A DNA stretch of 64,000 nucleotides from Macrostomum lignano (GCA_002269645.1 NIVC01003954.1:1-64000), one strand, 5' to 3'. Shown: positions 24,778-62,691, counted from the first letter of the stretch. The notes: generated from the sequence alone by a model not told the origin. Program-made: numbers and translations.

Positions 24778-25166
24778 ATGACGGGTTTGTTGTTGCAGCT
24801 GTGTTTCTTGTTGCTATGCCAACACGCGCCAGTCGGTCGCTGCCTGCTTCATCGGAGCTGCACCAACCGACTCAGTCTGTACGTTGTGGTACCCAGGTGC
24901 ACGGCTTACTATGTGAATGCGGCCCTGATTGACCCGGCTTACCGGCTGGGCTGGCGGGCGGTGCAGAGACGCCAGTCCGAGTTCCATCCGCTGCTTACTG
25001 GCTCCGGTGACAGAGCGGTCAGCCACCAGTTCATCTACGAGGATGTCAAATGGTACGAGAAAGTCCTGGAGGGTGTGACAGACGGTTCAGCGACTGATGT
25101 GGAGACGGTGGACCCATACTACCTCAACTACAGGATGAACGCCTACTTCTATAATGTTTCCGTTGG
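24778..25166 (+). CDS. Receptor guanylyl cyclase variable cassette V1, exon a (signal peptide + start of ANF-receptor ligand-binding domain)
   Basis: MTGLLLQLCFLLLC hydrophobic leader; LSLYVVVP...IDPAYRLG resembles the first strand/helix of the ANF-receptor fold; donor GG|GTGAGT, phase 2. Confidence 0.75.
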
Positions 25167-25204
25167 GTGAGTCTTGCGTTCGTTTTATGCGGGGCAATGA
25201 TGAC

Positions 25205-25790
25205 GAGAGGAGGGGAGATGTGGGGAGAGGAGATGCGAGGAGAGGAGGAGAGAAGTGGAGAGAGGAGATGTGGGGAGAGGATATGTGGAAGAGGAGATGT
25301 GGGGGGGGAGAAGATGTGAGGAGAGGAGATGTGGGGAGAGGAGAGGAGATGTGGGGAGAGGAGAGGAGATGTGGGAAGAGGAGAGGAGATGTGGGAAGAG
25401 GAGAGGAGATGTGGGGAGAGGAGATGTGGGGAGAGGAGATGTGGGAAGAGGAGATGTGGGAAGAGGAGAGAAGATGTGGGGAGAGGAGAGATGTGGGGAG
25501 AGGAGATGTGGGGAGAGGAGATGTGGGGAGAGGAGATGTGGAGAGAGGAGAGGAGATGTGGGGAGAGGAGAGGAGATGTGGGAAGAGGAGATGTGGGAAG
25601 AGGAGATGTGGGGAGAGGAGAAGAGATGTGTGGAGAGGAGGAGAGATGTCGGGAGAAGAGAGAAGTGGGAGGAGGGGAGATGGGAGAGGAGAGGAGATGT
25701 GAGGAGACGAGGAGGAGAACTGGGGAGAGGAGAGGAGAAGAGGGTGGTGTGGGGAGAGGAGGAGAGAAGAGGACAGAGACAGGAGAGGAC
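25205..25790 (+). repeat. (GGAGAGGAGATGTG)n purine-rich satellite
   Basis: Tandem units at the start of the V1 internal intron. Confidence 0.9.
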
Positions 25791-26147
25791 AGAGGTAGGT
25801 GAGCAGAGATACTGAGCCTGGAACTGTGGAGCTGAGTGGGGGGGACTGTAGAAGCCCAGCTGAGAAACCAGCAGGGATGATCATCAACTCAATGTGCTGA
25901 GAATCGAATAACGCACTTCTTTATATCCAAGCTTCTGGTGGAAGCACGTTGAGAGCAGCGAATAAGAGCTCATTCCAGACCTCATCAGCCACCAGTCAAG
26001 TCCAGTCTGATTACTCAATAATTTATGTACGAGTAGCTTGTTGCATCGGCTGGCAACTCAAGAGTTAATAAATACACTATTATCAAACCCTTCCAGTTCA
26101 TGTAGCTCCAGAGTTTGTGGGGAAAATCGGGGAAATGGGGAAAATAG

Positions 26148-26500
26148 TTAGTCAGTTAGTTACTTAGTTAGTCATTCAGTTAGTTAGTTAGTTAGTTAGT
26201 TAGTTAGTTAGTCATTCAGTTAGTTAGTTAGTTAGTTAGTCAGTTAGTTAGTTAGTTAGTTAGTTAGTTAGTTAGTTAGTTAGTTAGTTAGTTAGTTAGT
26301 TAGTTAGTTAGTTAGTTAGTTAGTTAGTTAGTTAGTTAGTTAGTTAGTTAGTTAGTTAGTTAGTTAGTTAGTTAGTTAGTTAGTTAGTTAGTTAGTTAGT
26401 TAGTTAGTTAGTTAGTTAGTTAGTTAGTTAGTTAGTTAGTTAGTTAGTTAGTTAGTTAGTTAGTTAGTTAGTTAGTTAGTTAGTTAGTTAGTTAGTTAGT
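26148..26500 (+). repeat. (GTTA)n microsatellite
   Basis: Near-perfect tetranucleotide run. Confidence 0.97.
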
Positions 26501-26942
26501 AAATGAAAGGTTAGCCCGAGTTTTCGCAAGTGCATAGAAACGTCTGTGCAGGTGTTGGGCGGGAGCCTGCCTGCACCGGTGATCCAATTATCCCTTTGCT
26601 CGTAAAGGATACTTCGAGTCATTCCGAATGATGCGGCTGTCGCTTATGCGAGACGTTGAAAATAATTAAAGACAGAAATTTAGCTTAAACTGCAGGCCGC
26701 GAAAATTGCGGCGGGGCATTTGGAGTTCTCAAGCTCTTATCCTGCTCTCATCTTCGGGAGAACGGCTAACCAGGCTGCTGTGCTGTGGCATTCACGAAAT
26801 TTTGCAGTTCATTTTTATCTTTTAAAAGTTCGATTAATTATGTTTTTGGATCATCTGTAAAGGTTCTAGTAGAAAGAAAAGTAAAGTGTACACTTTGTTG
26901 TTCTCTAAAAGCTAAAAGTCTAAAAGAATCCATCTAAAAGAA

Positions 26943-27085
26943 GGGATAGCCAAGTGGCTAGAGCATCGGACTCACGACTGAAAGGTCGGGAGTTCGACTC
27001 TCGACCAACTCGGAACAATTTGCGTCCTTGAGCAAGACACTTAACTCTGCATTGCTTCAGTTCACCCAGCTGTAAAATGGGTTTC
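26943..27085 (+). mobile_element. tRNA-derived CORE-type SINE
   Basis: Pol III A-box TAGCCAAGTGG and B-box GTTCGACTC, followed by a MIR/CORE-like domain TCCTTGAGCAAGACACTTAAC...CTGTAAAATGGG. Confidence 0.85.
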
Positions 27086-27134
27086 AGCATTAGCTGGCGT
27101 AATTGAGGATGTGTGGTGACCCCCTCCCCTCCTT

Positions 27135-27538
27135 GATCATCATCATCATCATCACCACCACCATCATCACCATCATAATCATCAGCATCATCATCATCAT
27201 CATCATCATCATCATCACCACCACCATCATCACCATCATAATCATCAGCATCATCATCATCATCATCATCATCATCATCATCATCATCATCAGCATCATC
27301 ATCATCATCATCATCATCATCATCATCATTATCATCTTCTTCTTTACCACCACCATCATCATCATCATCAGAATCATCATCCTCATCATCATCATCATCA
27401 TCATCATCATCATCATCATCATCATCATCATCAGCATCATCATCACATCATCATCTTCATCATCACCATCATCATCTTCATCATCATCGTCACCAACTTC
27501 ATTATCATCATCACCAAAATCATCATCAGTATCATCAT
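27135..27538 (+). repeat. (CAT)n microsatellite
   Basis: Source of the poly-Met/poly-Ile pseudo-ORFs. Confidence 0.97.
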
Positions 27539-60697: not shown

Positions 60698-60729
60698 GTT
60701 AGTTTTATGGTGCCGTTTGGAGCTTAGAT

Positions 60730-61190
60730 CCGGCGGATCGGATGTACACTGGGAGTGAGGGGGATCGGATGTACACTGGGAGTGAGGGGATCGGATGTAC
60801 ACTGGGAGTGAGGGGGGATCTCGGATGTACATTGGGAGTGAAGGGGATTGGATGTACACTGGGAGTGAGGGGGATTGGATGTACACTGGGAGTGAGGGGA
60901 TCGGATGTACACTTGGAGTGAGGGGATCGGATGTACACTTGGAGTGAGGAGGATTGGATGTACACTGGGAGTGAGGGGGTTGGATGTACATTGGGAGTGA
61001 GGGGGGATTGGATGTACATTAAAGAAGTGAATAGGATCGGATGTACATTGGTAGTGAGGGGGATCGATTGTACGTTAAGAGTGAGGGCGAACTGAATGCC
61101 ACTGAAAGTAAGGTCAGAGAGAATGTACATTGGAATTGGTAGCGAGTTGAATGTACATTGCGAGTGGGGGTTGATGACGGAAGTACATCG
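60730..61190 (+). repeat. 23-24 bp minisatellite (GGATGTACACTGGGAGTGAGGGG)n, decaying rightwards
   Basis: Tandem units. Confidence 0.9.
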
Positions 61191-61296
61191 GTAAGAATAA
61201 ACTGTTAGAGTACAACTTCGCGCATCAATCAAACTCCGCGGTGAATTTGTGGTTTTCAGCCAACCAGTCCAAGCCATAAACTCACGCACCTTGCAG

Positions 61297-62093
61297 ACCT
61301 GACCCAGATGGCTCTGTACGCCGTGGTTGTCCTGCTAGTCCTGATCTGCTTCCTCACCATCCTGATCTTCGTCATCTACCGCAAGCTGCGTCTGGAGAGC
61401 GAACTGCACGGCATGAACTGGCGTATCGCCTGGGAGGAGCTCGAGCCCACCGAGAGGGTGGCAGCCCGCAGGCGGAGCCTGGCTCAGCCACAGCCACCGC
61501 CGCCGCAAAAGCAGACGACTAATAAGAAGAAGCGGGCTCGCCTAAATCAGAAGAAGCAGCAGCAGCAGCAGCCGCACTGGTTCTTCGCCAACCATCACGG
61601 GACGAAGCGATCCAATCGAGGAGATCCGGACGAGGCCGCAGCTGAAACTCTGCCGCTCCGGCCGTCGGGCGGAGGCGCCAATGACAGCGGCGGCGGTGAC
61701 ATCGGAGCCGGAGACTCGCAGAGCGTCGTCCAAATGGACTCGGCCAGCATGGAGTCCGTGGAGACGATCGCGGGAGTGCCGCTCAGCCAGATCCCCACGG
61801 CGCAGCTGTTCGCCAAGACCGCCTACTACAAGGGCACTCTGGTGGCGCTCAAGCAGCTGAATTTGCGCAACAAACGCATTGAGGTCACCAACCGCCTGCT
61901 GATGGAGGTGAAGCGAGTCAAGGACCTCGCTTCCGACAATGTCGTCCGCTTCATCGGCGCCTGCTTGGACCCGCCGAACGAGTGCCTGGTGACCGAGTAC
62001 TGTCCGAAAGGCTCTCTGCAGGACATCCTGGAGAATGACAATCTTAACCTGGACTGGATGTTCAAGTTGTCGCTGATGGCCGACATTTGCCGG
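61297..62093 (+). CDS. Receptor guanylyl cyclase constant exon C3 (TM helix, juxtamembrane region, start of kinase-homology domain)
   Basis: Phase-1 acceptor; TM ALYAVVVLLVLICFLTILIFVIY; RKLRLESEL..MNWRIAWEEL; YKGTLVALK...NVVRFIGAC...TEYCPKGSLQDILEN...LDWMFK.SL..DICR; donor CGG|GTAGGG, phase 0. Confidence 0.96.
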
Positions 62094-62094
62094 G

Positions 62095-62357
62095 TAGGGG
62101 CAATTTCATGTGCCAGCGGCCCAGGCTCGATTCCAAGTGCAGTCACATTAATTTGGGGCTAAATTCGAAGCTCAGCTTAGCTCTGCTCGTGCAATTAACG
62201 CCCTTGAAGTGTACATGCCTAACGATAAATACAGTTAGGGCCGCTGTACACTCCTGTGTGAGTGTGTGCCTGTGCGTGTGTCTGCGCGCTTGTGTGCCTG
62301 CTCACAGGAGTAGGCGGAATGGGCAGTAGTGCCTCTCGCCGGTTGTGTGATAATGCC
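62095..62357 (+). mobile_element. Probable tRNA-derived SINE (5'-eroded)
   Basis: B-box-like GGCTCGATTCC at ~62124, followed by the repeat also found at 58961-59165. Confidence 0.6.
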
Positions 62358-62519
62358 CACAGCGCCCCTGCCTCTAACTAAATAAAACTAAAAGGGCTTT
62401 CATAAGCTCCAAAACCTCACATTGTTTGGCGCGATGTCAAGGATAGAAGGATAGAGTTGTCCTATGTGTTACTAGCTAACAATGGATCAATAAGACATCA
62501 TGTTTCACCCACTAATCAG

Positions 62520-62691
62520 GGAATGATCTACCTGCACCACTCGTTCGGCTCGCATGGCAATCTGAAGTCGTCAAACTGCATGGTGGACTCGCGGTTCAGC
62601 TTGAAGATCGCGGACTTCGGTCTTCAGTCGCTGAGGTCAAACAAGCTGGAGTACAGGGACAAAGAGGACGGGGATTACTCAACATATCGCA
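62520..62691 (+). CDS. Receptor guanylyl cyclase constant exon C4 (kinase-homology domain); gene continues beyond the window
   Basis: Phase-0 acceptor; GMIYLH...[24 protein letters not shown] (HGN in place of catalytic HRD, diagnostic of rGC pseudokinase domains); donor CGCA|GTGAGT, phase 1. Confidence 0.96.

Follow-up and report, generated by a model that had tools for sequence, protein, structure and literature searches.

How many receptors can be built from one receptor guanylyl cyclase gene? This question is raised by a stretch of genomic DNA from the free-living flatworm Macrostomum lignano (GCA_002269645.1, NIVC01003954.1:1-64000; 64,000 nucleotides, referred to as a whole as the window), in which four 5' coding cassettes, V1 to V4, precede a single series of constant exons beginning with C1. 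According to the original prediction, made from the sequence alone, each cassette encodes a different front part of a ligand-binding ectodomain and all four share the remainder of one receptor. For the follow-up analysis the window was compared with a stretch of a sister contig and with paralogous loci. We consider it very probable that the locus carries four alternative 5' cassettes in tandem, arranged as V1-V2-V3-V4, which are spliced to C1 and share one receptor guanylyl cyclase body.

The anatomy of the array agreed with the original prediction in most respects. All exon boundaries of the four cassettes held, with open frames (Table 1), each cassette starts with an ATG and a hydrophobic leader, as was claimed, and each ends in a phase-1 GT donor. 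The cassettes comprise 805 (V1), 1144 (V2), 694 (V3) and 718 nt (V4); since all four lengths are 1 mod 3, all cassettes end in phase 1. The internal introns of V1, V3 and V4 are of the GT...AG type and leave the frames open. C1, with its phase-1 acceptor at 59641, was the only compatible downstream exon. Exons for a transmembrane, kinase or cyclase part had been reported as lacking between the cassettes, and none were detected from 24.7 to 59.6 kb by tblastn with the receptor body and by a cassette hidden Markov model (HMM). Neither tblastn nor an HMM of 95 cassettes, run on all six-frame open reading frames (ORFs), yielded further cassettes or hidden body exons in the window; it holds exactly four cassettes. 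The scan for the ANF_receptor domain which the original prediction had proposed gave a match to Pfam PF01094 for V1+C1, V2+C1, V3+C1 and V4+C1, and three of the cassettes exceeded the cut-off alone (V1 with 27, V3 with 33 and V4 with 57 bits). One estimate had to be corrected: a cassette covers about half of the ligand-binding domain and not about two thirds, as the junction aligns between R208 and V209 of mature rat NPR-A, which has an ectodomain of ~435 residues. The bounds of the constant exons were refined by threading the database protein P0001 (see below) through the window.

Table 1. Cassette exons, constant exons and cassette-to-C1 junctions of the receptor guanylyl cyclase locus in the window.
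Feature	Position	Strand	Description
V1 exon 1	24778..25166	+	ATG, leader, start of the ANF-receptor fold; phase-2 GT donor (gtgagt); ORF
V1 exon 2	34725..35140	+	End ...IGLSRA; phase-1 donor T/gtgagt, giving F at the junction
V2, single exon	37927..39070	+	Leader, Ser/Thr-rich repeat, divergent ANF half-domain; phase-1 donor
V3 exon 1	45074..45411	+	ATG, leader, first part of the fold; phase-2 donor
V3 exon 2	47136..47491	+	End ...IASKYS; phase-1 donor G/gtaaga, giving V
V4 exon 1	51843..52137	+	ATG, leader; phase-1 donor; from M34 100% identical to P0001
V4 exon 2	55568..55990	+	423 nt, phase 1 in and out; end ...LEEVR (R-type)
C1, first constant exon	59641..59752	+	VVLCADPDTVRDIMIRAEELGFINGEYVFFNIDLFS; phase-1 acceptor after T-rich ...tttcag; common to all cassettes
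C2	60135..60697	+	Second half of the ligand-binding domain and juxtamembrane Cys motif
C3	61297..62093	+	Transmembrane helix, low-complexity juxtamembrane region, start of the kinase-homology domain
C4	62520..62691	+	Kinase-homology domain continued; the window ends in the next intron
V1 junction (predicted)			AGCAGGGCGT / TCGTGGTTTTG; peptide SRA-F-VVLCAD
V2 junction			CGTCTATCTG / TCGTGGTTTTG; peptide RLS-V-VVLCAD
V3 junction (predicted)			AAATACTCCG / TCGTGGTTTTG; peptide KYS-V-VVLCAD
V4 junction			GAGGTTCGAA / TCGTGGTTTTG; peptide EVR-I-VVLCAD

Two of the four junction peptides that had been predicted were recovered verbatim in annotated proteins. P0001 (UniProt A0A1I8GAT2, a MAKER-type model), to which the protein from V4 and the constant exons is 99-100% identical, joins V4 to C1 and reads ...EEVR-I-VVLCAD. 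P0002 (GenBank BOX15_Mlig001010g1) runs from V2 directly into a body 99.7% identical to that of P0001 and contains ...NRLS-V-VVLCAD. The gene for P0002 lies on contig NIVC01001069.1 of GCA_002269645.1, in a stretch (L001) that matches the window colinearly, with an identity of about 93-99%, and holds V1 exon 2, V2, V3, V4 and the body. Because it is colinear, near-identical and equipped with the same cassettes and body, L001 is, judged by its sequence, an allelic or recently duplicated copy of the locus in the window. The GenBank annotation of GCA_002269645.1 was produced from RNA-seq via STAR/StringTie/TACO plus a de novo transcriptome and not ab initio (PMC5730564). As the BOX15 models are transcript-derived, the joining of V2 to C1, with V3 and V4 skipped, therefore has transcript-level support.

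The constant exons identify the kind of receptor. Behind P0001, the database matches were M. lignano paralogs, followed by receptor guanylyl cyclases named 'atrial natriuretic peptide receptor 1-like' or 'gcy-28-like' from brachiopods, nemerteans, molluscs and insects, each of them with ANF_receptor, kinase-like and guanylate cyclase domains. The ectodomain matched NPR-A over residues 26-459 (phmmer, E about 1e-58), and the Cys of VVLCAD in C1 aligns with C213 of rat NPR-A. A hydrophobic stretch in C3, ALYAVVVLLVLICFLTILIFVIY, forms the single transmembrane helix, which is followed by the kinase-homology domain (Pfam PK_Tyr_Ser-Thr and Pkinase match C3 and C4). The window stops short of the cyclase domain, which P0001 and P0002 contain (PF00211) and whose exons are found in L001 at 39450-42515; L001 alone also shows the rest of the kinase-homology exons and the exons for dimerisation. 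With the ectodomain, the transmembrane and kinase-homology part and the cyclase all found, the gene is, on domain content and alignment, an NPR/GCY-28-type receptor guanylyl cyclase. The vertebrate NPR-A, NPR-B and NPR-C ectodomains (PDB 1DP4, 1T34, 8TG9, 1JDP) have the same fold across the entire ectodomain. An AlphaFold model of the V3+C1+C2 ectodomain (mean predicted local distance difference test value, pLDDT, 80.6) aligned over its full length with the NPR-A and NPR-C ectodomains (Foldseek E about 1e-29 to 1e-30), which gives weak support to a compatible topology and says little on lobe packing.

The arrangement is not confined to one locus. Three more M. lignano loci on different contigs, L002, L003 and L004, were mapped. 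At L002 and L003 the body is preceded by cassettes like V1, V2, V3 and V4, arranged as in the window (the fetched stretch covers only exon 2 of V1). At L004 (10001-23272), an instance of cassette turnover, just the V1- and V4-like ones stand before the body. Paralogs of V1 exon 2 are present in L002, L003 and L004, and those of V3 exon 1 in L002 (50749-51042) and L003 (22623-22889); exon 1 of V1 in the window is 47% identical to the N-terminus of the paralog protein P0007. Between loci, cassettes of the same class are 30-60% and bodies 56-78% identical, and the duplications must therefore be old. Every recovered paralog cassette is open, with homology stopping at a phase-1 GT donor in the homologous codon, except for V1 of L003, which shows a frameshift ~20 codons before the donor with a short duplication at the site (1783-2300), where an assembly error is also possible.

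The paralogous loci also provide isoform pairs. The bodies within the pairs P0003/P0005, P0004/P0006 and P0007/P0014 are 98.6-100% identical and their N-termini 22-30%, with the switch one residue before VVLCAD. The base preceding the donor predicts the junction residue found in the proteins: T gives F (P0007), C gives L (P0003) and A gives I (P0014). Among these proteins, P0005 and P0006 (V2-like) and P0007 (V1-like, from L004) are transcript-derived BOX15 models, and V4-like cassettes are likewise joined to bodies in models of the paralogous loci.

The original prediction had taken the absence of stops and frameshifts as a sign of purifying selection, and this was confirmed by the codon differences between the window and L001, of which 20 were synonymous and 6 non-synonymous. 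In the absence of constraint 75% non-synonymous differences (~3:1) would be expected (binomial P about 4e-8). The differences were distributed as 1 synonymous and 0 non-synonymous in V1 exon 2, 12 and 6 in the non-repeat part of V2, 3 and 0 in V3, and 4 and 0 in V4 exon 2; V1 exon 2, V3 and V4 exon 2 pooled give 8:0. The old paralogs (30-55% amino acid identity) are saturated at synonymous sites. A comparison of exon with intron divergence between the window and L001 was discarded as a measure of constraint on its own, since the copies are too alike (introns 84-100%, exons 97.9-100%), and the codon count took its place. The part of V2 left out of the count is a Ser/Thr-rich segment after the leader, formed by a 33-nt in-frame tandem repeat (38041-38267, 6.9 copies, unit DATRDSTASLA), with a copy number of 7 in the window and of 4 in L001.

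The same junction was encountered in other phyla. Among the database matches listed, isoforms encoded by one gene share 10-56% identity across the first ~250 residues and 100% thereafter. Such sets are formed by the RefSeq proteins named 'atrial natriuretic peptide receptor 1-like' of molluscs, of the nemertean Lineus longissimus and of the ant Mycetomoellerius zeteki, with two to four N-terminal halves per gene; the molluscs are Mytilus edulis, M. californianus, M. trossulus, Mercenaria mercenaria (four N-termini), Argopecten irradians (three), Saccostrea, Ostrea, Crassostrea, Mya, three Haliotis species and Biomphalaria. In a joint alignment the switch falls on one common column, one residue (I, V, F or L) before [VI]V[VI]LCA, which fits a conserved phase-1 intron. 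The predicted architecture is hence not specific to flatworms.

Two classes of cassettes can be told apart by their ends: an R-type, ...[AS]xxx[AST]R, represented by V4 of the window, and a G-type, ...[VI]Gxx[YF][SAGT], represented by V1 to V3. The RefSeq sets show the same two motifs (...A/S-x-x-x-R and ...[VI]G-x-x-[YF]-[SAGT]), and most of the listed genes with several N-termini pair one R-type with at least one G-type, while for a few only G-type forms were retrieved. The classes were recovered without the last 12 residues, the majority of the top five matches agreeing in 91 of 95 cassettes, and 22 of 23 arthropod cassettes are closer to lophotrochozoan cassettes of the same class. Because this class matching holds across arthropods and lophotrochozoans, the two cassette classes predate the split between these groups. 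The RefSeq sets are predicted isoforms, and the flatworm cassettes are much more diverged, their class being ambiguous beyond the end motif: assignment by cross-phylum BLAST was tried and rejected, as the top matches mix R and G, and the terminal motif is what supports V4 as R-type and V1 to V3 as G-type. A flatworm elaboration (one R-type and three G-type) of an older two-class cassette system is the best explanation for the M. lignano array. Tentatively, the protostome NPR/GCY-28 cyclases might even have been 'two-headed' ancestrally, with R and G alternatives, the G-type having multiplied in bivalves and flatworms, so that one body would serve several ligands, possibly with cassette-specific self-sorting of dimers.

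How could such a gene work? In the mechanism that we propose, each cassette would supply a start codon, a signal peptide and the first ~210-360 residues of a periplasmic-binding-protein-type ligand-binding domain, a part equivalent to NPR-A residues 1-208, to which the membrane-distal lobe contributes its first segment and the membrane-proximal lobe its beginning. A transcript that starts or is 5'-processed at a given cassette would use the last donor of this cassette to join C1; the 5'-most cassette in the transcript would act as donor and any cassettes downstream would be removed as intron. The products would share the remaining ectodomain, the transmembrane helix, the kinase-homology domain and the cyclase and differ in their ligand-binding front halves. 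In NPR-A, the chloride site, the distal dimer contact and a large share of the surface touching the hormone fall in the region matching a cassette. As hormone contacts lie in this region, the cassettes should change ligand recognition and possibly partner choice; specificity for ligands, and perhaps for dimerisation, would be a property of the cassette, with an unchanged output of cyclic GMP (cGMP). The cassettes may be chosen by separate transcription starts.

The same architecture could be operated differently, by spliced-leader (SL) trans-splicing of a long precursor at an acceptor 5' of the ATG of the cassette, after which its donor would be joined to C1 as before. In M. lignano about 30-39% of the genes are SL trans-spliced and about 7% of the assembled transcriptional units are multi-gene precursors (PMC5730564, PMC8629364), and in V2 a CTCCAG, which conforms to the trans-splice acceptor motif [T/C]TNCAG (motif from PMC8629364), stands one base upstream of the ATG. 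However, the ATGs of V1, V3 and V4 lack an adjacent motif of this kind, the SL itself ends in ATG (PMC8629364) and would be out of frame with the ATG of V2, and the gcy-28 forms of Caenorhabditis elegans are described with separable promoters in the promoter data of PMC9249223. Trans-splicing as the selecting step therefore appears rather improbable to us, though it is the strongest of the alternatives.

Several observations weigh against the reading of the locus as four exchangeable first halves of one receptor. The evidence for the junctions consists of annotated models and not of raw reads, and the RefSeq and MAKER isoforms are predictions. V2 alone stays below the Pfam ANF_receptor threshold and matches only with C1 attached, despite its clear paralogs. 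The model of V3 with the constant exons superposes only moderately on NPR-A (template modelling score about 0.5, predicted template modelling score 0.51). Furthermore, the cassettes upstream could splice to the acceptors of V3 exon 2 and V4 exon 2: V4 exon 2 could be included in frame after any upstream cassette, and the transcript-derived models skip both exons. The acceptors of both have poorer pyrimidine tracts than that of C1. A docking/selector pairing was not found by blastn-short between the 600 nt after each cassette donor and the 1500 nt before C1, where the longest inverted matches measured 9-10 nt (E 0.7-2.7) and were thus at chance level; nor did the four post-donor regions have a common motif.

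The remaining objections concern V3 and V1. The claim of one gene with four cassettes and one receptor guanylyl cyclase body is borne out by products for V2 and V4 here and for a V1-like cassette at a paralogous locus. In the database, no protein joins V3 to the body at any locus, and neither an annotated V1 protein of the locus in the window nor its V1-to-C1 product was found. V3 is annotated only as an orphan of 252 amino acids, P0121, which reads through the donor into the intron, and the V3 paralog of L002 is likewise represented by a read-through orphan model, P0122 (~250 amino acids). V3 in the window is also without a Cys that both its paralogs keep. The search with V1 returned zero matches and missed even the 46-48% identical paralogs that were found locally, being word-seeded and thus insensitive; because of this, its negative outcome means only that a near-identical annotated V1 protein does not exist. 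Minor isoforms would not pass the TACO filter (isoform-frac 0.75) applied in making the GenBank annotation (PMC5730564), and for this reason the lack of annotated V3 and V1 isoforms is weak evidence.

These data could be taken to mean that only some of the cassettes are functional first exons, and that V3, perhaps also V1 here, are relics of duplication or small genes for truncated secreted half-domains. Apart from the read-through models, the missing products and the lost Cys, such a view can draw on the decay and loss of cassettes elsewhere, namely the frameshifted V1 of L003 and the lack of V2 and V3 in L004. Against it, three paralogs sharing only 43-55% identity have an intact V3, and in all three the homology ends exactly at the phase-1 GT donor; no non-synonymous difference from L001 has accumulated in it. 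Of the six residues that hardly vary in the variable half, V3 keeps five, and the sixth, with GL.C in place of GP.C, deviates in the same way in both its paralogs. In addition, half of a bilobed binding-protein fold would hardly be stable alone, and minor isoforms would have been removed by the filter mentioned above. We regard relics or truncated genes as unlikely and infer from the sequence that V3, and V1 at this locus, are used.

Finally, it is very improbable that shared bodies are only mimicked by chimeric models of transcripts, or by duplicates collapsed or expanded in the assembly of a polyploid genome rich in repeats: the Mlig_3_7 assembly is highly redundant and some MAKER models are clearly wrong (P0083, P0014), but the window has its order and junction in common with L001, an independent and near-identical copy, and with the three diverged paralogous loci, body exons are absent between the cassettes, and gene sets of other phyla from different pipelines have the same junction. 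The common layout of L001 and the three loci also speaks against a misassembly of the region, which had been considered beforehand. As to the misbuilt models of the UniProt/WormBase type, to which the read-through models P0121 and P0122 also belong, P0083 is a V1-like cassette fused to a V4-like one and P0123 has frameshifts, and P0014 (L004, 17252-18158 region) starts in a 17-amino-acid tandem repeat, i.e., with a repeat-derived N-terminus.

In clustered Pcdh, UGT1A and GCNT2, alternative 5' coding units stand in tandem, bring their own start codons and leaders, and are joined to a first constant exon. The likeness to Pcdh and UGT1A which had been claimed for the locus holds for the tandem units with their own ATG before shared constant exons, and as in Pcdh, UGT1A and GCNT2 the variable part is the extracellular or substrate-binding one and the constant part the signalling or catalytic one. 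It does not extend to the cassettes themselves: unlike those of Pcdh and UGT1A, three of the four (V1, V3 and V4) consist of two exons and contain an internal 3' splice site, owing to which a promoter-proximal choice of the donor alone would be insufficient for exclusivity. Moreover, the split is placed in the middle of a single folded domain and not between domains. Clusters of the Dscam type resemble the array in that one of several homologous coding units enters each mRNA; in contrast to these, the cassettes are 5'-terminal with their own ATG, and the complementarity is not above chance. Vertebrate NPR genes are described with a single first coding exon, and alternative N-terminal halves are not known for vertebrate NPRs.

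The statement that no such arrangement had been reported for a receptor guanylyl cyclase was too strong. RefSeq already lists isoforms of this kind, and a partial precedent within the same receptor family is published for C. elegans, where gcy-28.c and gcy-28.d were amplified, according to the primers given, with different forward primers (ATGs) and the same reverse primer and share the 3' end (PMC9249223). The promoters described there are separate, that of.c being broad and that of.d being active in AIA and a few other neurons (PMC9249223). A Haliotis homolog in our match list is itself named gcy-28-like. Judged by these primers and promoter data alone, gcy-28 differs from the M. lignano locus in having two N-terminal forms as opposed to four cassettes. 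A full-text literature search on alternative first exons or promoters in receptor guanylyl cyclases did not reveal a description of a conserved alternative-cassette architecture. A conserved variable/constant organisation that splits one folded domain is thus apparently undescribed, though implicit in the RefSeq isoform lists, and it is not a categorically new mechanism.

The ligands of invertebrate NPR-like receptor cyclases are mostly unidentified, and deorphanisation usually equates one gene with one receptor. If one gene indeed offers two to four binding half-domains, each isoform needs its own ligand testing, knock-outs of constant exons remove several receptors together and gene counts underestimate the receptor repertoire. 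Each cell type could then obtain its own hormone or chemosensory channel from one gene by self-sorting of dimers. The split in mid-domain, at an intron position conserved across phyla, also represents a natural experiment in domain modularity and reveals the exchangeable half of the NPR fold. M. lignano being a transgenic model, the cassettes are also separate handles (probes, reporters, knock-downs specific to one cassette) on cGMP signalling.

Very long microsatellites of the (ATCT/TCTA)n type are located in the V4 intron (53727-55110) and at 59757-60130, where they occupy nearly the entire intron between C1 and C2; similar arrays are present in introns of the paralogous loci. The remaining elements of the window are situated upstream of the cassettes. 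An exon for the C-terminal two thirds of a small GTPase of the Ras/Rab family (18646-19089, +; Pfam Ras, E 7e-33) lies ~5.7 kb upstream of V1 on the same strand. A long terminal repeat (LTR)-retrotransposon-like element (2061-8302, +) comprises gag-like ORFs with a zinc knuckle, a pol ORF of 1103 codons (4752-8060) with protease, reverse transcriptase, RNase H and integrase domains, and direct repeats of 134 nt, 99% identical, at 4084-4217 and 8169-8302. It is preceded by a GC-rich tandem array with a 20-nt period (638-1879), in which all six frames are open. An ORF with a GIY-YIG nuclease domain (11448-12134, +; Pfam E 3.5e-7) possibly stems from a Penelope-like element, and a short ORF on the minus strand (14084-14341) with VYNWVKQFEAGRTNVADLPRSGQPS resembles, by inspection only, the helix-turn-helix N-terminus of a Tc1/mariner-type transposase.

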